This document shows, piece after piece, positions 6,997 to 49,013 of a stretch of DNA of 49,013 nt. The number at the start of each line of letters is the position of its first letter. Position 1 is the first letter of the stretch. This DNA is from Bigelowiella natans CCMP2755 (lineage: Eukaryota > Protista > Cercozoa), in assembly GCA_000320545.1 (NCBI GenBank), contig ADNK01001300.1:1-49013 (forward strand), in the 5' to 3' direction. The notes beneath the pieces were generated by a model that did no database searches, was not told the origin of the DNA, and was given only the letters and a program-made list of their open reading frames with translations. A program made the position numbers and the translations under genes.

Positions 6997-7049
<53 letters not shown>

Positions 7050-7503
7050 AGTAGCAATATCACGCGCTCGCATACATGAACACACACGAATATACACGAA
7101 CACTCGAACACACACACACACACACACACACACACCTCACAATATCGACAGAAAGACACACTCACGCGCACAGATACGCACACGAATATGGCGCACACGC
7201 ATGGCAGCAGGATGTCACGAATATTGGCTCATAGCACTAAAACAAAGAGATTACTTATGATATATATATATATATATATATATATATCTAATTATGTATA
7301 ATATGCCTCATAGTACGTGCCATGACAAGAAGAGACCTCTTCAAGGGCAGTGAGAAGAATAAGAGCCGCATTATCGGAACCGACTCAGACACCATACCGG
7401 AAAAAGACATCACTCCCAAGATCAATCACTCGTACACGAAATATACCTGTGCATGACTATGAGTATGATAATGATAATGATATATATATATATATATTTT
7501 TTT

Positions 7504-7549
<46 letters not shown>

Positions 7550-7607
7550 TGTATCAATGATGAAGAGGCGAAAGAGAGGAGAGAAGGAGGGCGGGGAGAA
7601 CGCGGCT

Positions 7608-7642
<35 letters not shown>

Positions 7643-7863
7643 GATAACCTGATTAAACACAAACAGATGGTTGTACTCCATGCTTAACCCGAGCTCCAAA
7701 AAACCTCAGGTGCTACTTGTATTTCTTCGATATTCGCCAATAAACAAAATCATCATGAGAGCAAAACTGAGAATCCATAGCAGTATAAAGAAGAACGTAC
7801 ACGGATTATTGGGACTTTTTGTAGGGCATACCCTGTTGCGCACACACAAATAACGAGCGTACA

Positions 7864-7904
<41 letters not shown>

Positions 7905-8443
7905 ATATGGCCTTCTATGCATGAATTTCACCTGTAAAGGACGAGATTAATATCTCCCACTGTTCTTCTCTCCCTTTCTTGCTTTATCTCCTGGCTCCAA
8001 ATCGGCACCCCCACTCCTTCCCACCCCACCCCTTCCTGCTGCATAGGCCATTGTGTATAAGTACATAATGGCGTTGTTGATCGTCGTGGACACAATCATG
8101 TTCATCCTCTCCACGGAGCCAGCCTTTCAAGATCGGATTTCAATGTAAGAGGAGGATTTAAAAGGGTGGGGGGGACAAAGAAGATAACGAGCACAGGGAG
8201 GGGTGGGGCTTGGAGACCATGTTCCCGCCAACCACTAATATAAAATTAATTCGTGATATTCTACGGCTTCACATCTTCTATGCTATGCTTTCCGTCGTTG
8301 CTATGAATTGCTACTCTCGCCTACCCCTCCTCCTACCTTCCCCGTCTCTCAGCGTCTTCGAGTTTGAAGTGACCCTGATGAGCGTCATCTTCCTTGTGGA
8401 GTACTCTTTGAGATTGTAATTGTTCTCCAATAAAAACTTGCAC

Positions 8444-8485
<42 letters not shown>

Positions 8486-8509
8486 ATGCGCACATACATA
8501 CGCAGGCAC

Positions 8510-8554
<45 letters not shown>

Positions 8555-9085
8555 AACTTATTTATATGTAATGAAGTGATGGTGAGTAGAGGAGGAGACG
8601 AAGGAGAAGTAGACGGACATGTGTGTTAAGTAGAAGTCGTTCATCCCAATCTCGTGCCATAATACTACTTGCTGCGAGGGGAAACCGAGGATAGCAATAA
8701 CGACGCTGTGGCGACGTCTCCCACAGTCCCTAATTCACGCACCCCCCCCGCATACTAGATACGTGGTCACTGAGAGTCGAAAATACCGCGACCCTTTTTG
8801 GGGTAGAATAAGGTCATCCTACTACGATCATCATATAAACTTACTATTTATATTCTACCTGATACATGTGCGTGAAGTGTGGTAGTTGCGCTCAGTCCTC
8901 AATTATCGGGCCCTCCCTTCCTTTACCGTTATTCATCCTTAGGTTCGTTGGGTCAATGTCCGCTCTCATAGACGCAGCGGCGTTCATGCCTTTCTTCCTT
9001 CGCTTCCTGTTTTGGTAATAGCATTGGTACTAGTATTAGTAGCAGCGACAGTGGGAATGGCAGTAACGTTAGCCTAGTGATAGAT

Positions 9086-9121
<36 letters not shown>

Positions 9122-9561
9122 TGTTTGCGTTTGCACGCGCGCGTGTGCGTATGCATGTAAGAGTGATAGCATTTAGATGTACCCTGTGCTCGTCTCAGGG
9201 AAGATTTCATCGTTATTAGTTCCCTTTAAGAATGCTTTTGTCCGCCCCTTCTTTTCCTCTTCCTAACCCTCCGACGTATTTCACTTCTCCTCCTCCTCCT
9301 CCTCCTCCTCCTCCTCCTTCTCTATACTACAACAAAACACACTGCCACCACAGGCATCCGATCCCAACTTTATCATACCTACGCGTCCTTCGGCTCCTCC
9401 GAATACTGAAGACAGAAAGATATGCGGAGGCGTGCGCGTCGGCATGGCGGGTGATCCGATTTAATGGCGAGATTCTCATCGTCGCTGTCATGATGTGCCT
9501 TTTCCTCCTGCTCTTCACCTCCACGGCACTGTCAGTAAGCGGACGAGTGGGCGAGCAAGAT

Positions 9562-9603
<42 letters not shown>

Positions 9604-9698
9604 TTATATTAATGTGATGGAAGGAAGTGCGAAGAGAGAGAGAGGAAGAGCTGGGGAGAGCTTCTCTTTCGTTCTCATGAACGTGATATTGATATTTT

Positions 9699-9735
<37 letters not shown>

Positions 9736-9759
9736 CAATTATATTTTAATTATCTCATA

Positions 9760-9802
<43 letters not shown>

Positions 9803-12299
9803 CGTGTGTGTGTTGCGTGCTTCATTTATTCCCCTTTGTGCTATCACTCGACATTTATTCTCTAGTCCTCTAACCCCTCCTCTCCTTTCCATTTCGCCTC
9901 CCCATCCCCTCCATCGAAATATGAATAAAACAGCTACTACCTTCAACCCGGACTCAAACACGATACGGAAGATTTTCAATCGATCCCTGCATGCATGTAC
10001 CTCGCCCTTCTCATGCTTACTGGACAGGTGCTAGGGAAATAATGTGATGATGATGATGATGATGAAGACAATGAAGGAACTGTTGTTCAAAGGACCTGAT
10101 AATTGGTTGTTCCTATCTTTTATATTATATCCTCTTTCTCCTCCTCCTTCTCCTCCTCCTCCTCCTCCTCCTCCTCCTCCTTCTCTTGCTGCTGCTGCTT
10201 CTTATTCTCATTCTCATTCTTATTTTGGTTCTTCCTTTGCTGCACTTATCCACAACATCATCTTCGCATTTGAAATTGAAAGGGGGTTCCAGAGGGCCAG
10301 TTGCCGTGGTACACAAAGTTCATTGTTATCATGACTACGTGCTTTTCAGTGGCAATGTTCGCCATTCCATCGTAAGTGCCCGTGGAATTGATAAAAAGGA
10401 TGATCACAGCGCTGATGATGACGAGGAGGATATATCTCGTATCTTTTGTCCTCCCCTCGCCCCCTTTCACCCATATTTTCTTACTTATCCGTTTCCGATC
10501 TGTTTCGCTTCGTTGTGGTGTGATGAGAGTGGCACGGCTATTCATCATGTTGCGTGCAAAATTGGGATCCTTTATTGCGAAGTTTAGAATCCAATTTTGA
10601 GCTTACCTTTTGCTAAGTTTTGGTATGTTCTGAATGCGGCGATGTGGGATGCAGATCTATGTTGACGTGGGGGTTTGAGGCGGAGGCCATTCGCATGGCG
10701 CGTAGCAAATATATCAAGGATAAAAAGAAGGAAAAGCACTTCCAGCTTCATAACGAGGTTTGAGGGGAAGCTCATGTTGTCATTCTGTTTCCTCTCCAGT
10801 AGCTAGGAGAGAAATAGTCTAATAAAATGTTAGATCGACGTATACAATGAGGGCACGTAGATGCATAAATGTGCAAGCGCATCTTCACGTCCCTTTCCTC
10901 CTCAAATACACGCACAGGAGATGCCCGAGAGCGATAGCTCATCTACGTCGAGCGAGGGGGGAGGCAATTCCAGTGACGAGGAGTATTTTAGGCAGATTGC
11001 TGGGATTGTCGTTGAGCAGGTCCTTAGTGATACAGAGCAGCTCTCTTCCACAAGTTCGCAACCCCCCCTCCTCTTCCCGTAGTCATAACTGCCGCAATGT
11101 CTATGAAATAGTTACAAAATACTGCGTCCTCCACAGCAAACATGTTGTGGCGGAGACTTCTACTGTTCGCCCCTCTCTTCTGTTGGTAACATTTTCACGA
11201 TGATTCCGTTTTGCCAAGGAAATAGCAGAAGAGGCCATTCCGATACCACAATTTTGGGTTACAATATTTCTTGCCACAATTCATGCGTACGTAGGGTGAT
11301 GAGGAGGAGGAGGAGGAGAAGGAAATAGAGAACGAGGCGAAGGAGATTTTTAACGAAATTGATTCGAACCACTCCGACAATGTGTCCTTCAAGGAGTTCC
11401 TTGATTTTTGGAAACGTCACTGCGCACAGGTGAGTAGTAACCAACAATAGCAGTAGCAGTAGTAGTAGCAGTAGTAGTAGTAGTAGTAGCAGCAGCAGCA
11501 GTAGCAGGATTATTGAACAGGTACTACTAAGTGTGTCCACGATGGCTTCCTCTTCTCACTTATTTTTCTCCCTTCAATCAATAGGGCATGCTAACGTCAG
11601 GATCTCCCAGGAACGACAACATCAGCGGCCCATTTCCAAACGCTCTCCACATGCATAATTTTCCACCACCATCCCCCCCTCCACAGCCACTGGATGGTGA
11701 CAACAGTCGTAAACATCATCATCATCATCACCACCACCACCACCACCGCAGTAATCATCATCAGCATCAGCAAAGACATCAGGGCTCTTCTTCACCACCA
11801 TATGCTCACAATCATCGAAAGCCTGATACGGTGCCGCGCCGAAACTGCAGGGTGGCTAGACAAGCAAGGAAATCAAGGGAAGGTGAGAAAGCACCATCGC
11901 TTTCACCGCACTCGAACTCCCACGTCGGAGATAATGATGAAGAAGCTATGGCTACTAGACCTGGTCATGGAAAAAATCATTATTACAAAAGTTTTCGTTA
12001 TAAAGACGCGCACATTCGCCGTGGCTGACAATGTTCCCCCCCCACACCCCTTACTCCCATGAGTTTCTGCTTTTGTCCGTTGCGTGAAAGTTCGAATGTC
12101 GATGTGAAATAGAACTAATATATCTTTTCTGACTGAGACGTCCGGTTGCTTGATTTTGATGTGCGAAGATCTCTCATCCAGAGCCCGACAAGACATATTA
12201 GACCTGAAGAGAGATGTTGAAAGTGTGAAAAGCATGCTGCAGAACATCCTAAGTCTGATGGAAGAGCAGAAAAGGACGTCATCGTCATTGCTGCGATGA
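6255..12299 (+). CDS. Voltage-gated-type 6TM cation (K+-channel-like) ion transport protein with C-terminal EF-hand, poly-His tract and coiled coil
   Basis: Exons give IMALLIVVDTIMFILSTEP (S1), VIFLVEYSLRL (S2), SALIDAAAFMPF (S3), YLRVLRLLRILKTERY (S4), FQSIPACMYLALLMLTGQ|GVPEGQLPWYTK (pore), FAIPS|MLTWGFEAEA (S6), EIFNEIDSNHSDNVSFKEFLDFW (EF-hand), and an end LDLKRDVESVKSMLQNIL...LLR*. Confidence 0.85.
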
Positions 12300-13260
12300 A
12301 CCTGGTGACTTTGGCCGCAACAGGTACGCTTAGCTGCTTCATTAAACTTTCAAATAAAGTCACTGTGTCAATAGCTAGATAGACAATGTACACGTGTGTA
12401 TAAGATGTTTCTAGCTGTATCTGTACAAAACATTTTGCTCATCACTTACATGAACAAAGTACACAGCTGTGAAGGTGTCATGATAGCGATGCATGCAAAT
12501 GAATGCCAAACGAGCCAAACGAGCTATGGCTAGATGGAAGCACGCTAGCACGTAGAAGAGGGCGGAGTGTGCATTGACATCGAACGCGGCCTACCTAGAT
12601 TCTGTAACAACATGATTGAATGTACTACGCTACATGCACAACTCTACCGACAGATGAGTGAACATGCACATTTAGCAAGCGGATGGATCATGCCAGCATG
12701 AGTGTGGTTGTTCATCTGGGATGACATGCTAGCATGTGCAAGCAAGCAAGTCCCAGCCCTAAATCACGTTGCACATCACCGCAGCACCGTGCTGGCCCGA
12801 CAAAAGCCTAGAATCTATCATTCTCAGGATCCGTGCAGTGTCGCTTCGACTAGTCGAACGCGTTTCCGACTCATTTTGGCTTGTTGCTGTGTTCCTGGGT
12901 CGAATCTGTCTAGCTGTCTAGCTGTGGGTGAACCAATTCCTGGCATCTCTCACAATTTCGTGTACGAATTTTGAACTCATCTGATATGGCGTCTTGCGCC
13001 GCGAGGGACCGCAATCCTAGAGTTTTTACATGAAAAGAATCATGCGTGCTGTGCTGAAAATGTAGATGCATGCCAAGTAGCTTCATTGAATAGCAGCTGT
13101 GGGTGCGGCATGAAAATCGGCGCAACCAAATCGAAATGCATGCGCACAGAAGCTAGTCATATGGATGATCAAATGATCCGCGCTGCTACATGTGTAATTC
13201 GGCTGAAGGTGCAGCATTGTAATTGTCAATGTAGATCTCTTCAAAGGTCTTCAGTTTTTG

Positions 13261-13664: not shown

Positions 13665-14313
13665 CCTGGGCAGCTTCTAAATAGCTCACTGCTTCATCTA
13701 CAAAGTAATTATAATTGTTGAAACCAATGTTGGGTATATTTGCGACTTCCCATTTGTTGATGTAAGTATTCACTTCCCCAACTAGGTATCTCAAGACCCT
13801 AAGTTCTCCCCCCCAAGCTGCTATCATGGAGAGTGTCCATCCGTTGGCGTCGATATGATCGGACCTTGCTCCAACCTTTTCTATTAGTGCCTTCACTAGT
13901 TCGATGTTCCCGTTGAGAGCGGCATGCATTAGAGCTGTTCTTCCAGAAGCATCCTTAGCTTCGACGTTGCTACTGGCCTCCATCAGGTACCGCATCGTTC
14001 ACATGTGCCCAGGTGAGTTTTTAAGAGAAGCACAGAGTAGTGGAGTCCAACATTTTGTGTCTCTAGTATGAACATTAGCCTTGGCATCTATCAAAACTCG
14101 CACAGCGGAGGAACGGCCCTCTCTTGCGGCAAGAAGCAAGGGAGTTCGCCCTTCATCATCCTTGAGCAACACGCTGGCCCTCATCTCAATGAGCTCTTTC
14201 AACAACTCACAATTGCCTACTTTTGCCGCTGCAAGGACTCTGTGATCATTGACAATCTTAGCAGGGGGAGATGACGGGGGATTGGACGAGAGGCCGGATC
14301 CACAGCCCCCCAT
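13261..14313 (-). pseudogene. Ankyrin-repeat protein with an MGGCGS acylation-like N-terminus, interrupted by an in-frame TGA at 13999-14001 (possible pseudogene)
   Basis: Ankyrin motifs GRTPLLLAAREG, CWTPLLCAS, GRTALMHAALNG and GWTLSMIAAWGG. ORFs 13999-14376 and 13510-13995 are in the same frame (GHM*TMRYL). A microsatellite intron precedes a last exon AMQILQDVF...QM*. Confidence 0.75.
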
Positions 14314-14496
14314 GCTGAACGGAAAGGTAGTGCTGCATTCGAGTGCGCTCTGCGAGGGATTTTTGCCAACAAGCATTGGCCGTTCGTGCTACACTCTGAG
14401 GCCGTTTTTGAAGAGCGACAACATCTTTGGCCTCAAGCGCGTGGTGCTGATTGGGGACTCCTAACCAGGTTTTCTGTTTGTGCAACTTCAACCACA

Positions 14497-14845
14497 TGTG
14501 TTGCAGGGCAGGCGCAGTGGCGCACGGGGCTAGCAACAAGGTGACTCTCAGTGGAGAGTTTGAATTCTTGTTTTATTAAACGATTAAATTTTGTTAGAAA
14601 TTGCGGGCACAAATATTAGTTTGTTCTAGAAGGTTTCTAGAAGGTTTCCGGGTAGTCTCCGGAAAGCTCTCGACTATTCTCGTGGTTCGAGAATACTTCC
14701 GGAACCATCGGGAAGACTAAGGTGGGTACTAACTACATTAACTATACGACATAGGTTGGGTTCCGACTGGGTCCCGATATTTTAGGTTCCGATATTAGTC
14801 TAAGGAAGGAAGGCCTACTTCGAGGTAAGCGGCCTCGACAGGACA
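14497..14845 (-). repeat. 3' LTR (TpA-rich copy)
   Basis: Aligns without gaps to 17657-18005 with 24 substitutions. Carries AATAAA on the minus strand at about 14572-14577. Confidence 0.93.
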
Positions 14846-14857
14846 ACACCTCCCCCC
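14846..14857 (-). other. Polypurine tract
   Basis: GGGGGGAGGTGT lies immediately 5' of the 3' LTR on the minus strand. Confidence 0.75.
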
Positions 14858-15193
14858 AGCTCGAAGGTAGGATCTTCCTCGTTTTTTTTCGTTTTCGCAA
14901 TTGGGGAGCGTGGTAACTTCATCGAGGGTCCTTAGTGACAATGGATGGAGAGAGAGATAGGCAGAAAAACTTGCAGAATGGAGTTCGAGAGAGAGTGAGA
15001 TAGCGAGAGATATTTTCGAATGGTCATGGAAGTTAGATGCATAAAGGAGAGAGAGTCAGAGAGAGAGAGAGAGAGAATGACTGCAAGGAATAATGCACAA
15101 TAGTCATCAGGCCTGTCTGGTGCTGTGGGCCTTGATCCCATGTAGCCTGGTTTCGGTGCGGTCGCTCTTGTCCCATTCTCCGTGTCGGGTGCC

Positions 15194-17593
15194 TTAGCCG
15201 TTTCCGACGCACTTGCCAATCCACCAGGAGAGGTACTCGCTCCTTATCTTCCTTCCCTTGTCATCTTGCCAGAAGGGTAGCTTATCCTTTGGGTCGTTCA
15301 CGTGCCATTGCACATTGTCTAGGCCGCAAGAGTCTTGGTGCCACTCATCGGAGGGAACGTCGGGCATGATGAAGGTACATGTCTTGTAGTTTCGTAGCTT
15401 GAGCTTGTCGTAGAACCTGGGCATGTTCTTTAGACCGGGACATCCAACGTAGACGTCCTTTCCTTTCCAGTCTTCGTCCGTGTTAACCACAGTGTTTTTG
15501 TAGGAGAGGTCGAAGGTCTTCACATCCCCAACTTCCTCTTCAGCCTTCGCCGCAACATCCGAGGTAATGGTGCAATCTTTCAACACTTCGTCGTTAACAG
15601 TGCAATCCTTTGACACTTTGTCGTTCTTTGATGTCTTGTCTTTCGTTAGCCTACCTTTCCCTCCCCTCAATCCGAAGGATTTGACTTGTGTGGGCTGGAC
15701 GTGGGGCATTGCTGGTTCGTCAAGCAGTCGTTTGGTACTGGCTTTGTTTCGCTGATGTTTTTGGTCGCATTGGTTTGGAGCAGTCATGCTCTTAGCAAGA
15801 GATTTAATTTCGTTTCGAGTGTGGAACTTGAGCATGTTATTGTTGTTCATCTTGCACTCGTAGTTCCTTTTGGTCAATTCAACACAATGAATGGTGTGGT
15901 CGCAGAAGTTGATGACAGCGCCTACTTGATTTAGGAAGTCGTTTCCTAGAACAACATCCATGTCTGAATCTGACACGGTGAATGTGTGTGACACTGCAGG
16001 GCATCGTCTCCCTCCTAGCTGGACTTTCAACTTGATGGCACCGATGGAGCCAAAGTTTCCAGAAACTGTTTTGTGAAGTTCGCGGTTGATGTTCACCCCT
16101 TGTTGTGATCCCAAATTCTGGAGTGTTTGTGGTGAAACATGCGATTTTGGGAAGGCTCCTGAGTCCCAGAGAGCGTCAGTTGGCGTCATTTCGTCATTTC
16201 TGTTCGCGATGTTCACCCGAGACATCGCGATGTGACTGTCAATGTCATGGGCCGGGAGTTGGGCTGGGCTTTGAGGTTTGATGTGGTGCAAACCTGCCAA
16301 TTCTTCAAGTGCAATGTCTGAATGACCGTCGTTGTCATTGTCCTTCTTGTCCGTGTTTGTCGATGTGTTTTCGTTCTGTGCCAAGATTTGATTCACAACG
16401 TTTTGCATTTGTTGCAGTGAGCATTTCTTCGTTCCATCGCCGTGTGGCGTGGTCCCTTTTCCTCTTCTGCGGTTGCTTTCGAATTGCAACCTGTCCTTGA
16501 GGGTGGTTCTTGGCCTGTTGGCAAGGCGGCTTCTGCATTCCTGGGCCTTGTGCCCGATGGCACAACAATGCCCACACCGTCTGTTTCCCTTCTTGTCGGT
16601 GAAGTCTTTGGTGTGGACCACGTTTGGCTTTGGCAATGTTTGCTGAGTTGGGTCGTGTCGGCGCATCGTTTCTCTGGTCGCCAAGTCATTGACGATCTGG
16701 TCGATTGTTGTCAAATGGGGCCGGTCCAAAGTCAATTTAGCTGCGTCGATGCATGCACTCCTGAACTTCAAAAATCTTGAGTCATCATCGCCAGTGTTGA
16801 ATCCTTGTCGATCCAAGTCGTTCACCAAGTTGTCGAACCTCGTCCTGAATGCCAAAATGGACTCTCTGTTGTTTTGCCTGAGCGAATTCCATTTGGTGAT
16901 GAGCGTGTTGAGTGTGCCATTGTCGAATGCTGCCACAAATGCTGCTTTGAGCGTGTCGAACGAGAGGTTGTTTTGCTTTTCCAGCTTGCGCTGCAAGTTC
17001 ATGAACACGCCGAGGAGGTTCTCGTTCGGAAAGCAGTTGCTTTCCAGCACCGAGATCCAGCTGTCTTTTTCGTGCTGGCTGGGATTGGGCGCCATTCGGG
17101 TGAGTGAGCGTTCGATGTCTTCGAACCAACGTGCAGCTGTGCCGGGCGCACCGTGAAACTTTTCCAATTTGATTGAGACCCTTGAAGTTTGAGCAATTTT
17201 GCGTTGTTGAGCCGGAGCTTGTTGTGCTTGAGCATGCGATTTGACATCGCTGTCCGCTGGTGCCGGTGCTCTCGCCCCCGCGCGGCGAGTTGACGCGGCG
17301 TTGAAGAGGTCGTTCCATCCAGTGAGGTTCTCGTCGTTGCGAGTTCTCTGTTGCTCCTTGACTTCGAGCGTCCTTTCGTCGACGATGGTTGCACGCAGGG
17401 CTTCCCAAACCTCTGCTCCTTCGTCCGTGGTGATCCTCCTTTGGATTTTTGCAAACCAGAGCCTGGAGGGCTTCTTCTTTGAAAAGGCTTGAGCCAGCTT
17501 GTTCTGGACCAAAGGGTCGGAAGTGTCCTCTTCCTCAGAGAACTTGTTGATTGCTTCAATGAGCTGGTCGATCGGGGTTTTCCGCTGGGACAT
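15194..17593 (-). CDS. gag: Gag-protease polyprotein (799 aa) with a possible degenerate N6-adenine methyltransferase-like C-terminal domain
   Basis: Retrotransposon-gag-like region (KLEKFHG...W; LRQNNRESILAFRTRF), zinc knuckle CGHCCAIGHKAQEC, and aspartic protease ALWDSGA...VVLGNDFL. No YxDD RT, RNase H or integrase motifs. Confidence 0.88.
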   Translation of the reverse strand: MSQRKTPIDQLIEAINKFSEEEDTSDPLVQNKLAQAFSKKKPSRLWFAKIQRRITTDEGAEVWEALRATIVDERTLEVKEQQRTRNDENLTGWNDLFNAASTRRAGARAPAPADSDVKSHAQAQQAPAQQRKIAQTSRVSIKLEKFHGAPGTAARWFEDIERSLTRMAPNPSQHEKDSWISVLESNCFPNENLLGVFMNLQRKLEKQNNLSFDTLKAAFVAAFDNGTLNTLITKWNSLRQNNRESILAFRTRFDNLVNDLDRQGFNTGDDDSRFLKFRSACIDAAKLTLDRPHLTTIDQIVNDLATRETMRRHDPTQQTLPKPNVVHTKDFTDKKGNRRCGHCCAIGHKAQECRSRLANRPRTTLKDRLQFESNRRRGKGTTPHGDGTKKCSLQQMQNVVNQILAQNENTSTNTDKKDNDNDGHSDIALEELAGLHHIKPQSPAQLPAHDIDSHIAMSRVNIANRNDEMTPTDALWDSGAFPKSHVSPQTLQNLGSQQGVNINRELHKTVSGNFGSIGAIKLKVQLGGRRCPAVSHTFTVSDSDMDVVLGNDFLNQVGAVINFCDHTIHCVELTKRNYECKMNNNNMLKFHTRNEIKSLAKSMTAPNQCDQKHQRNKASTKRLLDEPAMPHVQPTQVKSFGLRGGKGRLTKDKTSKNDKVSKDCTVNDEVLKDCTITSDVAAKAEEEVGDVKTFDLSYKNTVVNTDEDWKGKDVYVGCPGLKNMPRFYDKLKLRNYKTCTFIMPDVPSDEWHQDSCGLDNVQWHVNDPKDKLPFWQDDKGRKIRSEYLSWWIGKCVGNG

Positions 17594-17635
17594 GCTTGCA
17601 GTGTGCTGCTGGGGTCGTTTGGGTCAGTTGTTGAT

Positions 17636-17653
17636 TTCCGTGAGTGGAAGCCA
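17636..17653 (-). other. Primer-binding site
   Basis: TGGCTTCCACTCACGGAA begins 3 nt after the 5' LTR on the minus strand. Its complement ends ...GGAAG-CCA like a tRNA 3' end. The tRNA identity was not determined. Confidence 0.7.
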
Positions 17654-17656
17654 GTT

Positions 17657-18005
17657 TGTGTTGCAGGGCAGGCGCAGTGGCGCACGGGGCTAGCAACAAG
17701 GTGACTCTCAGTGGAGAGTTTGAATTCTTGTTTCATCAAACGATTGAATTTTGTCAGAAATTGCGGGCACAAACATCAGTTTGTTCTGGAAGGTTTCTGG
17801 AAGGTTTCCGGGTGGTCTCCGGAAAGCTCTCGACCATTCTCGTGGTTCGAGAACACTTCCGGAACCATCGGGAAGACTGAGGTGGGTGCTGACTACATTG
17901 ACTACACGACATGGGTTGGGTTCCGACTGGGTCCCGACATTTTGGGTTCCGATGTTGGTCTGAGGAAGGAAGGCCTGCTTCGAGGTGAGCGGCCTCGACA
18001 GGACA
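17657..18005 (-). repeat. 5' LTR (TpA-poor copy)
   Basis: Aligns without gaps to 14497-14845. Only three TpA remain (GCTAG and two GACTAC). Confidence 0.93.
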
Positions 18006-18017
18006 CACACACGCGCG

Positions 18018-18086
<69 letters not shown>

Positions 18087-19026
18087 CACTCACATCACAT
18101 CACTCACATCACATCACACACTCATTGCTGCACGGCCGCACTTGGTGTGCGTTGTCCACTCCGAATGCCAAGTGGACCAGTCTGGTGGTGCCAGAGTGGA
18201 GGGCTGGAGGGGCACAGCCAGACGATTGGTTGCATTGCACATTGTCCACATCGCGCGAGGTGTTGCCACAACAACGTTGCTGGCTCCAGGGCTGTTTGGC
18301 TGCCTGGTTGTGTCCACGATGGCGCAGGCAGTGGCTGGACAATTGTGTGTGCACGTTGCTAGTCTTTCGGGAAAATGAGTGTGCATTGTCATGTTCGGAC
18401 ACAGCTAGCTAGCTAGACAGCAATGAAGCCTGATCCTTGTGATCTTGACGGCTAGGCGGTGTCGCTCAAACGATCACACGTCGTTCAATGCAACCTAGCA
18501 ACTCCAGAACGTCTGGCGTGCGTAGCCTCAAACTTGTGTCTCAGCTGAACACATCAGCCCCCGTGCTAGCAGTCTAGCAGTGCTAGCCGTCAGCAGTGCA
18601 CGCCATGCTTTCCTAGCCTAGTAGCATCTTGCACGCCTCACAAGCTAGCAAGCTAGCAAGGGAGATGTGTAGCCTCACTCTAGCACACTCCTGGCGTCGT
18701 TTTGATGGTGGACCGTGCGTCCTTGTTTCGCTAGTTCTCGCTGTTTCAAGTGCCATGAAATAAAGAATTTTTTGCAGCAGATCTTGCCGCGATCACTGAG
18801 CATTGCACCAAAGGTTCTACAGCATCTTGCTCAACTTTCAGATTCCGTATGTGCGTACACATGTGTGGATGCATCTAGCAGTCAAAGGACGAATTAATTT
18901 ACCTCGGTGTGGGAACTAGATGACCATGAAACTGTACTCAATGCGAATTCTCTTTCGTTTTATACACGTTTACATGTAAACTAGGTCGCGCCTGTACGCG
19001 ATATTGATCATTGAAATCATTGATAT

Positions 19027-25059: not shown

Positions 25060-25745
25060 GACACTGGGACATGTCGTACTAAGCAAATTTGGTACTAGTA
25101 AGAATGGTCATTTTTTTTTAAATCATTTCCATCGAGTTGCACGCAACATGAAAAGTGGCGTCGCTGAGTGCTCTAGTGCTGTGTCATCTTAGCACTGTGG
25201 CACTTTGCCCAGTCGCACAAGGTCACACGCTCCTTTCACAATGCAATGCGGACAAATCATGCCACATGAGGATGCCTATTGAACAAATCTAATTGATTGA
25301 TTACATCCTTGTCTTCCAACCCATGCCAAACCACCAGAATGATGACTTTCTACCCTGCTAGCCAGCGTAAATCTGCTCTAGCTAGCTAGCTAATGCTGTC
25401 TAACTACGAAGCAGGTCTAGACGTAGAAATGCACTCGTAGAGATCAGAGATGCGAAAGCGTCAAGCCATGCTAGCATGTCTAGATGTGATCATGCCGGAT
25501 TCAATTTGTCAGTACTAGCTAGCTAGCTAGCTAGAGTAGCTAGGTAGATTTGTACTTTCAATTTGTCAGTAGATTCGTACTCACTCTAGTTGCTACCGTA
25601 CACCACTAGACCATCACATCGATAGCGCTAGCTAGACGCGTATTGTGAGAGATCTAGAGATGTCTCAGTGTGATTAACTGCTGCTTCGAGCGGTGTTTAG
25701 CTAATTACATAGTACTTGACTGCAATGGATTGGAAGGAGGCTAGC
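25060..25745. repeat. CTAG-rich intergenic tract between convergent genes
   Basis: (CTAG)n runs at about 25378 and 25515, and more than 20 CTAG in total by eye. Confidence 0.85.
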
Positions 25746-30659: not shown

Positions 30660-31870
30660 TTTCAATGAGCGTATTTCGCATCTATGATGTGTACGCACAC
30701 GTACGTGCTAGCGTGTCAGATAGAATTAGCTGGTACATGCACATCTAATCTTGTCTACACTGCCATGGCTAGTGTCGTAGCGCCACGGACCAAAACAACA
30801 ACGTACCGCCACGTGTGTGCGCAAGAAGTCGAGCGACAATTCAATATATATGTCTAGTATATGTGGACTACGCAAATGTCACAAAATCCAACAACAGTAC
30901 GTACAAACAAGCACGCATCTAGATCTAGTGTGTAAGTACTTATACATATCTAGATCTTTCTAGCTCTAGCTAGCTAGCTAGAAACTAGTAAATCTAGATG
31001 CGCGATGTGACATGCTAGCTATAGCTAGGTAGCTAGATGTACAAACAACGGCATGCTTGCAGTAGCTTACACTAGCAGCTCCAGAGCTAGCTAGCTAGGC
31101 AGTGCTATGGAGTGCTGCATGGCCATTGCTAGAGCACATTGCAATCTTGTCTAGCTAGCTAGCACTGTCTAGGCTAGTAGTGGGTGATACTATGTTGTGT
31201 TGCAGGTCTTGCATAAGATCTAGCTAGCTAGCTAGCTAGCTAGTCCTAGAGTCCACAAGATCGATCTAGAGATCTCCAGATCGCGCTAGGGATGTGCGAT
31301 GGACTACCAAACTAGCTAGCTAGCTAGCTATTAGCTAGTAGTGCAGGCACAGCTACACTAGCTATCTAGCTATGCACCATGCTAGCATGATGGGCATGCG
31401 ATGACGCATCGCTAGATCGTCGCAATCAGTAATGTACGTACATGGAAGTCTAAAAGTAGATCTAGAGAGCTGCATGCAACGTTTGGAGCGCATTCTAGTA
31501 TCATTTGTTGTGCATGTATACTAACAAGATATGCTAGCTAGCTAGTGTGTCTGCTACTACTAGTTAGCTATCTAGCTAGCTTTAGAGCTAGATGTGTGCA
31601 TGCATAGCTATGTACGGCTTTGTTAAAAATTCTATCATGCATGCAATGCTCTCATCTGTAGCAGCTAGCTCTATCAACAACGAAATAAACAAAGAAAGGC
31701 CCATGAAAATAAACACATGAAGTGTTGCACTGCTAGACTGACCAATTATTAACTACAGTTAAATAGACTAGTAGACACAGTGCGTCCTACAAGCGTGATG
31801 CACACTAGCACAGTATTTACGTACTAGAGTACAAGGGTAGCTACTCTGTCATGGGCTAGAAACAATCAAG
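30660..31870. repeat. CTAG/(GCTA)n-rich intergenic tract between convergent genes
   Basis: About 55-60 CTAG by eye in about 1.2 kb, including perfect (CTAG)3-6 runs. Also rich in CATG/TGCA/GATC. Confidence 0.9.
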
Positions 31871-45505: not shown

Positions 45506-47663
45506 ATGTCTCTTGATGAGCAGCTCGCTCGAGTTCGAAGCAACATCACACGTAATTTCGCATCAAGAGATGATTTCGACCCGTGGGCATACGAGTCTTC
45601 ATCCATGGCGGACGACCTTCCATCAACACCGACAGTCGAGGCTGAGCGGATTCCGCGGGAAATGAAAGAAAAAAGGAGGCGTCGAAGCCCGGCGCCAAAT
45701 AAAGTCCGGTCTCGTTCCCCTGCTACTAGATATAAACCTGAACCGGAAAAGCCGCTGAGCGAAGCAGAAAAGAGACAAATTGAGGAGCGAAGAAAAGCCA
45801 AAGAAAAAGATGAGGAGGATCAGGCAAGACAAAAACAGGCCGAATTGGCTGCATATGAAGATAATCTCAAGGAACGTGAACGCGCACAGCATAAAGCGAA
45901 GCAGCGGAGGGAGGAGCGCGAAAGGTTAAAGGATGAGAAGCGAAAGAAACGAGAGGAGGAAAAACTCCAAAAACAGAAGGTACAGTATAAATCGTGTGTG
46001 CATACAAGAAATAATGTTGTCGACCACACCCCTAAAAAATATCTTCCACTTGCTTCCTAATTGCTGTGTATGTTTTATTTAGGATCTCGAAATGAAGAGA
46101 AGGGAACGCGAAAAGGCCATGAAAATGGCAAATACGAACGGGTTGGCGCTCTTAGTTACCTAGTTTCGATTATACTGCAAGGCCTGCTGTGTGCATTTCG
46201 CGTGAGTTGTTGTGGGAGGACCCGACTTGACAAATTGAATTTAACGACCTCTGTTGTTCGCCACAATCTTGGTCGCACCTCACCTTCCCTCTCCTCCTCT
46301 TCTCTCGTAGGAATCATCTCTCTTCTGCCGGGCAAAATTCCTCTGGGCAAAGACCAAGAAGGTGACTACGCCTGCCGTGTTTATATTAATGGTGCGGTAT
46401 CTCGATGTGGTACAAAACAAGTGTTATTTGAGAACAACATTTGCGTCCCTCCCTTTTTAGATAGATGATTCCTGCGATTGCTAATAGTGTTCTCCATCTC
46501 GCTTACTCGTTGCTTTCTCCAAATATCAACCTGTATTAGTCGAAATTCAAGTTACGTAAAGTCGTTACTTCTGAAGCGTGGAAGAGGTATCTGGACCTTG
46601 CCCCGCCGCCCCCGCCCCCCGCCTCCCTTATTTCTCCGATGAATGTAATGTATTTTAAACTAATACTTGACCGATATTCAACAGGGAAGTCCCCCGCCCC
46701 AAGAACTCGGTCCCCCGCCCCATCGCCACCACCCTCGCGCCGGCCGAAAGTTTCGAGTGGATGCACAAGGGCCCGGCCATCCAGGTTTACGAAAGATGCG
46801 ATGCTACGCAACCTTCCTTTTATATGATCTGACTCGCCATGCGTCGATTGATTACAGCAGCAACATCAGCGCGTTTTGGCTCACACTGTTGATGATGATG
46901 ATGATGATGATGATGATAATATTCCCTTCAGGTACGAGCCAAACAGCTTCCAAATACTGGACATGCAGGCGGAGGATCTTGGTTTCGAACAGTTTGACGA
47001 AAAGGTAGACACCGGCTGCTTTGCTAAGATAGATGATGGAGCAGGGGGGGGGATATAGTTTGCTGTGAGGCACCTCTGTAGCCACCGTGCAGAAATAGTG
47101 AATCAATCATGGGCAACGCTCTGTTGGGGATATGATGGGCTATTACGGAATATACCAACAGTCTTCTGCCTCCAACTGTATACCTCTACTTCCCCTCGCC
47201 CCCCCCCCCCCACCCACCCTCTCTCTCGTCCATAAGATACGTATGAAAAAATTACTCACCATTTCTTCTTTCCTCTTACCTGCTATTACCTATAGAGGAA
47301 AAGGGAGAAGATCCTCGCCCGCGAGGAGAAGAAGAAGAAGCTAGAGAAGCAGCAGCAACAGCCAGGGCACGACTCGGACTCGGACTCATCATCTTCGAGC
47401 GATAGCGAATCTCCTCCCAAGCCTCAGCAACAGCTCACGAGGGGAGGAGGGGGGGGCGAAGCTGGTGACAGCTCATCCTCCTCTTCGTCCTCAGACGATG
47501 ACGACGAGCAGGCAGCTAGCAGCCGAAGGAAAAGGACGCCTATGCGGTCGTCGTCGTTCAAACCGGTGAAAAGGAGCCCGGTAGCACCCCACCACGAATC
47601 CTCCGCCACCACCAGTAGCAGCAGCAGCAGAAGTGCTCCTGTGCGGCCTCGAGCGGGCACAAG

Positions 47664-47696
<33 letters not shown>

Positions 47697-49013
47697 CACG
47701 GCGAAGCGGAGACGGTCCATACCTAGGAGGTCCTCCCTTGGAGCACCGTCGCCTCGCAAAAGAATCAGCGGTGTGAGGGAACCCTCGCCCCGTCCTCTCG
47801 TTGGCTCGGAAGTGGGTGGTGTGAGGAGGCGGCGGCCCTCCCCAGGAGTAGTAGCATCGTCTTCTTCTTCGTCCAACAAAAGGATATCACCTGCAGCTGC
47901 GGCCTCCTCTACGGAAGAGGAGCAGAAGAAGAACCTGAAACCCACAAAGGCTGACGCAGCTTTAGATAAGGGAGGAGAGGTTGGGGGGGGGGCAGCAGCT
48001 CCCTCTTCCTCCATTATATCGGCAGCGCATTTAAACGACAGCTCTGATTCTAGTTCCGATGACGACGACGACGACGATGGCGGCGGCGACGGTGCTGCTA
48101 GTTCCAACCAGCATCTTCCTCACACCCAAGACCCGGCGGCAAGCAGTCCGAAAAGGCCAAGTAGTAGTACCGCAACAAAAGGCCCCTCGGCAGCGAGGGT
48201 TGTCGACGGTGATGTTGTCGTCGGAATGGTGGGTGGAAAGCAGCCTGCGATGCCGGCTGCTGATGCTGCGGGGCAAGGGCGTTTGGGGGGCAAGCAGCCA
48301 GCGGGTCTTGCAGGTGATGATGCTCATCACCATCAGCAGCAGCAGCAGCAGCAGCAATATGATCAGAAGCAGAGGCGGAACAACATGGTTGGTGGCAAAC
48401 GACCGATGATGGTGGGCGGAAAGCAGCCCATGACGACAGGGGGCAAAATGCCGAGAAAGCATCCCACGATAGGCGGGAAGCAGCTTCTTATGATGGAAGC
48501 AGCAGCAGCAGCAGGTGGTGGTGAGAGAATGGGGGGGGATTTTGACGTGAGCTCATCCTCGTCCTCAGAATCTGAGGAAGAAGAGAAAGAAGAGACTGCC
48601 TTCCTCGACGGCAAGGGCCCAAAGAAGATGGAGGAGGAGGAGGAGGAGGTTGGGGGAGGAGAAGAAGAAGAAGAAAAGACCCATCCTACCTCAAAGAAGC
48701 AGCAACAGCAGAACGCGGGGGGGGGAGGCGGGCAAAGCAATCCTGTGAGCAAGACAAACAAGCGCGGAACCAAGCGACGAAAGAAGGGGGAGGAGGAGGA
48801 TCGTGCCGCTGGAGAAACCAAGGAGAAGATCATGAGTAACAGCAAACTCTTATTCTCTCATCGGGGAACAAAATCATAATACTCACCCTGGAAAAATCAA
48901 GCAGATGAAGAAAGAAGCAGCAACAGTCAAGGCGGCGGTACGGCGGAAAAGGAGAAGGAAGGTTTTCCACAGGCATTCCAGCACTAAGAAGTCTGACTAG
49001 CAAAGCGAAGCAG
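45506..49013 (+). CDS. Large charged/low-complexity nuclear-type protein with a possible degenerate PWWP-like segment and GGK repeats; 3' end not resolved and may run off the window
   Basis: 184-aa first exon with a K/E/R coiled coil, an exon FLWAKTKKVTTPAVFILM (PWWP-like beta strands), and a 445-aa ORF 47542-48879 with repeated xGGKQP/TGGKMPRK. Confidence 0.55.

Follow-up and report, generated by a model that had tools for sequence, protein, structure and literature searches.

A half-erased LTR retrotransposon of Bigelowiella natans, probable scar of regional TpA-directed DNA hypermutation

Hypermutation directed at the dinucleotide TpA has been measured directly in the chlorarachniophyte alga Bigelowiella natans. 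In a mutation-accumulation experiment two integrated viral regions were found to hold 231 of the 302 nuclear mutations, and 230 of these 231 were A>G or T>C changes, all at TpA (Mettrop et al., bioRxiv 10.64898/2026.01.13.699255, 14 Apr 2026). The mutation rate was ~6e-7 per site per generation in the viral regions compared to 3.5e-10 elsewhere. Furthermore, 124 clusters of 1-kb windows were reported that are depleted of TpA and enriched in CpA and TpG. Reverse transcriptase (RT) and DDE domains were enriched among low-TpA genes, and transposons were inferred to be targets from this Pfam enrichment only. An ADAT2-like adenine deaminase was proposed to be responsible, with a plausible ADAT2/ADAT3 pair. 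Long terminal repeats (LTRs), retrotransposons and the motif CTAG are not mentioned (Mettrop et al.). Here an LTR retrotransposon of B. natans CCMP2755 is described, encoding gag and protease, that lies at positions 14497-18005 of contig ADNK01001300.1 (assembly GCA_000320545.1). Positions 1-49,013 of this contig were analyzed and are called the window below. The locus is very probably the scar of the regional TpA>CpA/TpG (T:A>C:G) hypermutation of B. natans acting on the integrated element. The phenomenon is already published and this locus is one more instance of it; a literature search for other TpA-directed hypermutation returned only the B. natans preprint.

The element is bounded by two LTRs of 349 bp (14497-14845 and 17657-18005), the sole long repeat within the window. 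An earlier note on this DNA had aligned them by hand, without gaps at offset 3160, and had counted 24 substitutions, every one TA in the 14497 copy and TG or CA in the 17657 copy, with no further change and all CpG intact. Pairwise realignment reproduced this count exactly: 24 mismatches and 0 indels, TA against CA (n = 9) or TG (n = 15) at 24 of 24 sites, 0 differences at the remaining 295 aligned positions, and 19 intact CpG in each LTR. The 15 TG and 9 CA show that both DNA strands were affected. The 14497 LTR contains 27 TpA (observed/expected 1.07). Three are left in the 17657 LTR, all common to both LTRs and each preceded by C, and at none of the 27 sites does the 14497 LTR carry CA or TG opposite a TA of the 17657 LTR. 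The proportions of converted TpA, 0/27 in the 14497 LTR and 24/27 in the 17657 LTR, differ strongly (Fisher p = 4e-12), and the latter amounts to 2.2 events per TpA. As none of the other 295 positions changed, the per-base rate at TpA lies more than about 100-fold above the highest rate compatible with the remaining LTR sites. The order of CA and TG along the 17657 LTR gave no significant sign of strand processivity (10 runs against 12.25 expected, z = -1.0, runs test). A flanking-base rule for strand choice gave no signal either: at sites with a G after the A on one strand only, counted by hand, mutation fell on the strand lacking this G in 6 cases and on the other strand in 5. Decay of methylated CpG by deamination of 5-methylcytosine resembles this pattern in turning a self-complementary dinucleotide into TG or CA by transitions on either strand. 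However, that process loses CpG, whereas here TpA is lost and the 19 CpG per LTR persist.

The loss of TpA does not stop at the LTR. The earlier note had described a dinucleotide-specific hypermutation of the LTRs; the dinucleotide specificity holds, and the process is neither restricted to nor delimited by the LTR or the element. TpA is erased on both strands over a tract of 2.7-2.9 kb (16017-18760 on the TpA map) which consists of the 17657 LTR, gag DNA without a second copy (1.6 kb) and unique host flank (0.75 kb), and which runs across the LTR/internal and the LTR/host border. Copy number of the LTR and of the internal DNA was assessed across the 91.4-Mb assembly, where the internal DNA of the element is present as a single copy. 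The observed/expected ratio of TA is 0.02-0.06 at ~16.0-18.4 kb compared to 0.81 in the rest of the window, and that of CA+TG is 1.15-1.7 in 16001-18500. Between 16017 and 18359 only 4 TpA are left where 101-124 are expected. Over 16017-18760 there are 22, all in CTA/TAG context and 16 of them in CTAG, while 37% of background TpA have a CTA/TAG context. TpA in other contexts is absent from 15839 to 18760. The left edge of the tract is step-like and falls between 15839 and 16017, and the right edge lies at 18760. Genome comparison showed that the host flank within the tract (18006-18760) is made up of a (CA)n microsatellite, unique DNA and a CTAG-rich spacer (18359-18734), in which no TpA is found outside CTA/TAG. 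Two other spacers, 25358-25744 (19 CTAG) and 30708-31859 (59 CTAG), keep ordinary TpA at 2.3-3.2 per 100 bp, so that CTAG-rich spacers are not TpA-erased as such. This comparison hints that the host flank lost its TpA together with the element and not already before the insertion. A third spacer, 12729-13020 (6 CTAG), is partly TpA-depleted (0.68 per 100 bp).

Pairwise comparison of the LTRs alone gives no polarity, and four lines of evidence were used to assign it: the erased tract, which holds the 17657 LTR and leaves out the 14497 LTR, the relatives of the LTR, the tyrosine content of gag and the direct measurements in B. natans. The earlier note had proposed to polarize the changes with genomic copies of the LTR, and the copies found, although diverged, do give TA as the ancestral state. 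Genome-wide there are only three relatives, on contigs C486, C974 and C1473, with 73-78% identity. Each is located within its own TpA-free tract, reaching some hundreds of bases past the LTR, and on C974 the whole 3.3-kb locus is TpA-free. One or more relatives have the dinucleotide opposite to that of the 17657 LTR (CA against TG) at 20 of the 24 discordant sites, and TA was kept in three observations. The opposite dinucleotide occurs in relatives at only 6 of the 29 CA/TG sites common to both LTRs (Fisher 6.5e-6). A mixture of CA and TG at one site indicates ancestral TA, because each is one step from TA and not one step from the other. A CpG ancestor is ruled out by the intact CpG and by the TA of the 14497 copy. 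Leaving out the alignment columns in which the 14497 LTR has TA raised the identity of the relatives to this LTR from 77-82% to 83-87%. The encoded protein points the same way. The part of gag inside the tract (residues 1-525) has 0 Tyr in 525 residues, while Tyr makes up 2.2% of the rest of the frame and 3.8% of a related polyprotein of 1659 residues; the TAY codons have become CAY or TGY. Alignment to the 1659-residue polyprotein was uninformative on Tyr>His/Cys replacement at 25% identity (Tyr kept at 0 of 16 positions, 2 of which are His). It is thus the 17657 LTR that lost its TA, while the 14497 LTR has kept the original state.

This polarity bears on repeat-induced point mutation (RIP) of fungi, which the earlier note had named, as CpA>TpA, as the only close precedent. 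A closer precedent exists in the TpA>TpG/CpA changes measured by Mettrop et al., and the direction is the reverse of RIP, as the tract and the relatives show TA lost in the 17657 LTR. RIP shares with the present locus that it is a hypermutation of DNA after integration, inactivates mobile elements, makes transitions only, interchanges CpA/TpG and TpA and acts on both strands. It is the textbook process for CpA/TpA, and from the LTR pair by itself one could suppose that a RIP-like C>T change struck the 14497 LTR and that the 17657 LTR is ancestral. Such an ancestor, however, would have needed an LTR with 3 TpA, a Tyr-free part of gag and a TA-free host flank, and would leave the mixture of CA and TG in the relatives at the same 24 sites unaccounted for. 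Direct measurements in B. natans also show loss of TpA. RIP makes TpA whereas the process seen here destroys it. Moreover, RIP needs a duplication and mutates both copies, while here unique DNA was hit and one repeat was left untouched; it creates stop codons, which TA>CA/TG cannot do; and its hosts are ascomycete fungi, not chlorarachniophyte algae. The RIP-like direction is regarded as extremely unlikely.

Since reverse transcription makes the two LTRs of an element identical, their discordance means that the mutations arose after integration. Editing before integration, either A>I on RNA by an ADAR-type enzyme or on complementary DNA (cDNA) by an APOBEC-type enzyme, with fixation by retrotransposition, would have yielded two identical LTRs instead of a pair discordant at 24 sites. 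Some points speak for the idea. ADARs favour a 5' U before the edited A, and hyper-editing of double-stranded RNA resembles the present changes in being A>G with a preferred 5' U/T. However, ADARs are a metazoan family acting at the RNA level, which cannot make LTRs differ or alter flanking chromosomal DNA. In vertebrates, LTR elements and retroviruses are known to be edited by APOBEC3 (e.g. PMC4866542), which resembles the present case in being a deaminase-type hypermutation with clustered transitions in integrated LTR elements. However, APOBEC acts on minus-strand cDNA before integration and leaves single-strand G>A changes in a GG/GA context, whereas here A:T>G:C changes at TpA are found on both strands (9 CA, 15 TG), after integration and with host flank included. 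Editing before integration is given a negligible probability.

The insertion is very young, as the earlier note had held, in agreement with 0 ordinary substitutions in 295 positions. From the figures of the preprint a rate of 1.1e-5 per TpA per generation is obtained (211/(6169 TpA x 3132 generations)). Assuming constant rates, although the process is episodic according to the preprint, conversion of 24/27 TpA needs ~2e5 generations of exposure, in which 0.04 ordinary substitutions are expected in both LTRs together (0 observed), and the absence of ordinary LTR differences caps the age of the insertion at ~1.5e7 generations. The locus dates the mutagenesis to the time after integration and shows that 89% of TpA can be converted before one ordinary substitution occurs.

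Repeats are error-prone in assembly, and contigs do break at the first 77 bp, which are identical in both LTRs; an error of assembly, polishing or base calling within one LTR could in principle mimic a discordant pair. Contigs of independent public runs were therefore aligned over 14200-18900: two DNA runs, of 2021 (X1) and 2025 (X3), used as contigs only, and RNA-derived contigs of 2018 (X15). These runs are possibly from the same strain as the reference, and the comparison thus rules out polishing errors and not a strain-specific history. A single contig of X3 spans 14544-17686 with 0 differences, X1 has contigs over 14200-14526 and 14544-15043, and the 2018 contigs cover 14446-14867, so that the 14497 LTR is reproduced by separate runs with 0 differences. 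The 17657 LTR is matched over 17704-18000 by a contig of X1 and of X3 each, again with 0 differences. The only variant listed, 14816 T>C, stems from short contigs that have 3-6 further mismatches and are paralogous LTR fragments. Furthermore, the pattern of TpA loss runs on into unique DNA. A polishing or base-calling artefact, which the earlier note had named as a possible refutation, was not borne out, as both LTR versions recur in the 2021 and 2025 contigs, and an artefact has practically no probability left.

The step in TA density inside the element, at 15839-16017, suggests another way to obtain a discordant pair, namely that recombination or gene conversion fused an unmutated LTR, with the distal part, to a mutated copy, in which case the LTRs would not stem from one integration. 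However, the LTRs are identical at 295 non-TpA positions, whereas 13-17% of such positions are different in the nearest relatives. Furthermore, the assembly has no second copy of the internal DNA that could have been the donor, and the tract passes seamlessly into unique host flank. Such a chimera is considered very unlikely.

The element is read on the minus strand. A polypurine tract, GGGGGGAGG (14846-14859, minus strand), abuts the 14497 LTR, and this reading of the sequence agrees with the strand of a frame of 799 residues (15194-17593, minus strand) that contains gag (Retrotrans_gag), a CX2CX4HX4C zinc knuckle, a DSG aspartic protease and a short downstream piece. The polypurine tract and the gag-protease frame on the minus strand identify the 17657 copy (17657-18005, minus strand) as the 5' LTR and the 14497 copy (14497-14845, minus strand, TG...CA ends) as the 3' LTR. 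A possible target-site duplication of 4 bp, CACA (14493-14496, partner 18006-18009), carries little weight, since a CA repeat makes up the right flank. The element is ~3.5 kb long with an internal part of 2811 bp, and no RT, RNase H or integrase was found by Pfam in the 799-residue frame. Direct LTRs with TG...CA ends, a polypurine tract, a zinc-knuckle gag and an aspartic protease are traits of the Ty3/gypsy type, and the element is an internally deleted, non-autonomous Ty3/gypsy-type LTR retrotransposon. The gag-protease is 26% identical to that of an abundant family with an intact polyprotein of 1659 residues, and a comparison of the 799-residue frame to a collection of 5.8 billion proteins gave no match. 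One polyprotein of this abundant family, encoded on a different contig of the assembly, matches JGI Bigna1 gene models at 99% identity, as expected for B. natans.

The sequence of events was very probably as follows. A single-copy, internally deleted Ty3/gypsy-type element inserted on the minus strand, after which a contiguous domain of 2.7-2.9 kb was mutated on both strands until it was nearly free of TpA. Besides the 5' LTR, the mutated domain takes in gag over its first 1.6 kb and the host flank over 0.75 kb, with the 3' LTR and the distal 1.2-1.3 kb left outside. Targeting was apparently positional, perhaps by a chromatin-like domain with its centre near the 5' LTR and the start of gag, and not read from the sequence. 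Following the preprint, the adenine of TpA would be deaminated on either strand, the resulting inosine being read as G. The earlier note had proposed a targeted enzymatic mutator in a non-fungal eukaryote; action after integration, TpA specificity and an algal host have stood up, while its enzymatic nature is an inference only.

This reading accords in many respects with the process of Mettrop et al. The species is the same, T:A>C:G changes occur only at TpA and on both strands, the effect is regional and strikes single-copy DNA, and TpA is depleted with CpA and TpG enriched. The rate advantage over background is compatible with ~1000-fold. The target is also of foreign origin, here a gag/protease LTR retrotransposon, although 0.75 kb of host flank is included. 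There are differences as well. The regions of Mettrop et al. are insertions of nucleocytoplasmic large DNA viruses and virophages, 25-186 kb long and far from saturated, whereas here a 3.5-kb element carries a saturated tract of 2.7-2.9 kb. Unlike those regions, this locus shows a step-like edge inside the element, spill into host DNA, and sparing of an identical LTR 2.8 kb away.

The mutational spectrum, its polarity, its timing after integration, the limits of the tract and its independence from repeats are established at the locus itself. Several points nevertheless weigh against the explanation as a scar of the B. natans process. The contigs of the 2021 and 2025 DNA runs equal the reference at the locus, without de novo change; the tract is saturated, and contigs hide rare variants. 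The identical 3' LTR is untouched, though 4/5 LTR copies of the family are erased. A mutated master copy could in principle have passed on some of the internal erasure, so that only the LTR changes are dated strictly to the time after integration, and the host flank may have lost its TpA before the insertion. Two TCTAGA sites of the 17657 LTR were converted; the CTA/TAG context thus slows conversion without blocking it, and the sparing of CTAG is a rate effect and not an immunity. Within this LTR, by hand count, 3 of 16 TpA in CTA/TAG context survived and 0 of 11 in others, numbers too few to test, and the signal comes from the wider tract, with all 22 surviving TpA in CTA/TAG. Finally, T>C and A>G at the self-complementary TpA are indistinguishable from sequence. 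This last point leaves room for a different chemistry, in which the thymine of TpA is modified, for example by hydroxylation, so as to mispair with G, or in which a TpA-specific modification of adenine comes first, instead of plain ADAT2-like deamination. In dinoflagellates thymine is replaced by 5-hydroxymethyluracil, preferentially at TpA. However, nothing at the locus points to a base modification, adenine deaminases with a 5' T/U preference are well known, and the preprint has its plausible ADAT2/ADAT3 pair. Another chemistry is judged rather unlikely, while retaining some weight. In the assembly the ADAR/ADAT1-type deaminase domain PF02137 (A_deamin) was detected at one locus, spread over several exons (C2414:14438-15741), without an expanded family; this is presumably ADAT1.

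The hypermutation ascribed to the B. natans process appears at this locus in a form that constrains how it is aimed. Unique DNA was erased while one of two identical LTRs was spared, and the process is therefore not repeat-induced. A guide recognizing the LTR sequence should find both LTRs, so that the outcome must depend on more than sequence. The LTR may draw the process to itself, with the 14497 copy shielded by some feature of its neighbourhood. From the 5' LTR and the start of gag the tract extends roughly equally far to either side (about +/-1.4 kb), and the 3' LTR lies outside together with the distal 1.2-1.3 kb. The element was inserted between an ankyrin gene and the CTAG-rich spacer. 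It is tentatively suggested, with somewhat less than even confidence, that the aim is positional and not by homology or an RNA guide alone: a chromatin-like domain would nucleate at the active end of a new insertion, stop near a highly expressed host gene and license the mutator. If this is true, half-erased elements mark where the targeting machinery should be sought. The locus is a natural experiment with a built-in control, as identical sequences 2.8 kb apart met opposite fates. Targeting neither requires sequence identity and repetition nor follows from them, which speaks against a RIP-like homology sensor, and the idea of an RNA guide raised in the preprint is constrained by it.

The ankyrin-repeat open reading frame (ORF) is found at 13999-14376 on the minus strand (Ank_2, 4.7e-11) and starts 120 bp from the unmutated 14497 LTR. 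RNA-contig depth, a rough guide, is 7000-12000 at 14200-14513 and ~240 inside the element. The 14497 LTR may sit in, or act as, the promoter region of this gene.

The erased tract has peculiar coding properties. Codon enumeration showed that TA>CA/TG never turns a sense codon into a stop and removes TAA and TAG. Indeed, the tract has 6 TAA/TAG stops against 91 TGA, counted on both strands, and 16017-18412 holds many overlapping ORFs of 80-257 residues on both strands. These long ORFs are expected artefacts, because TAA and TAG are erased and no stops are created, and for the latter reason the intact frame of 799 residues is no sign of function. The mutator inactivates by missense changes and by loss of TA-containing signals, unlike RIP. 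Erased elements keep long open frames despite wrecked proteins, which calls for caution in gene annotation of B. natans. In the active gypsy family with the 1659-residue polyprotein, copies differ by 0.05-2%, and 76 of 160 pairwise substitutions are TA<->CA/TG; the comparison was pairwise, without consensus, and the figures are sums of comparison rows that are not independent. The same TpA bias is present at a low level in these young intact copies, with ordinary changes mixed in, whereas the 17657 LTR is pure and saturated.

RNA-derived contigs of 2018 (X15) also revealed a spliced transcript of the plus strand (14446-17738), which runs antisense to the gag-protease frame. It has five GT..AG introns, 14864>15109, 15230>15321, 15372>15502, 15561>15648 and 15733>15999, all within the TpA-retaining part of the element, and the erased part 15999-17677 forms one unspliced piece. 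The sole splice donor checked reads GTAGGA (14867). Restriction of the introns to TpA-retaining DNA is read as a consequence of the erasure and not its cause, because erasure necessarily removes every splice signal that contains TA (GTA donors, TAG acceptors). In raw RNA reads (X22) only a local, partly fitting pile was seen at 16400-16870, from which sense transcription was not concluded.

At the GC-rich end of the window (48001-49013) TpA observed/expected drops to 0.36-0.43, over an ORF without Pfam match (47542-48879); this may reflect coding bias or a further partial tract. The (CA)n microsatellite that directly adjoins the mutated LTR is long (18006-18100) and has one CATG and a CGCGCG interruption. 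Runs of (CA)n, (CT)n and (TA)n are unusually abundant throughout the window.

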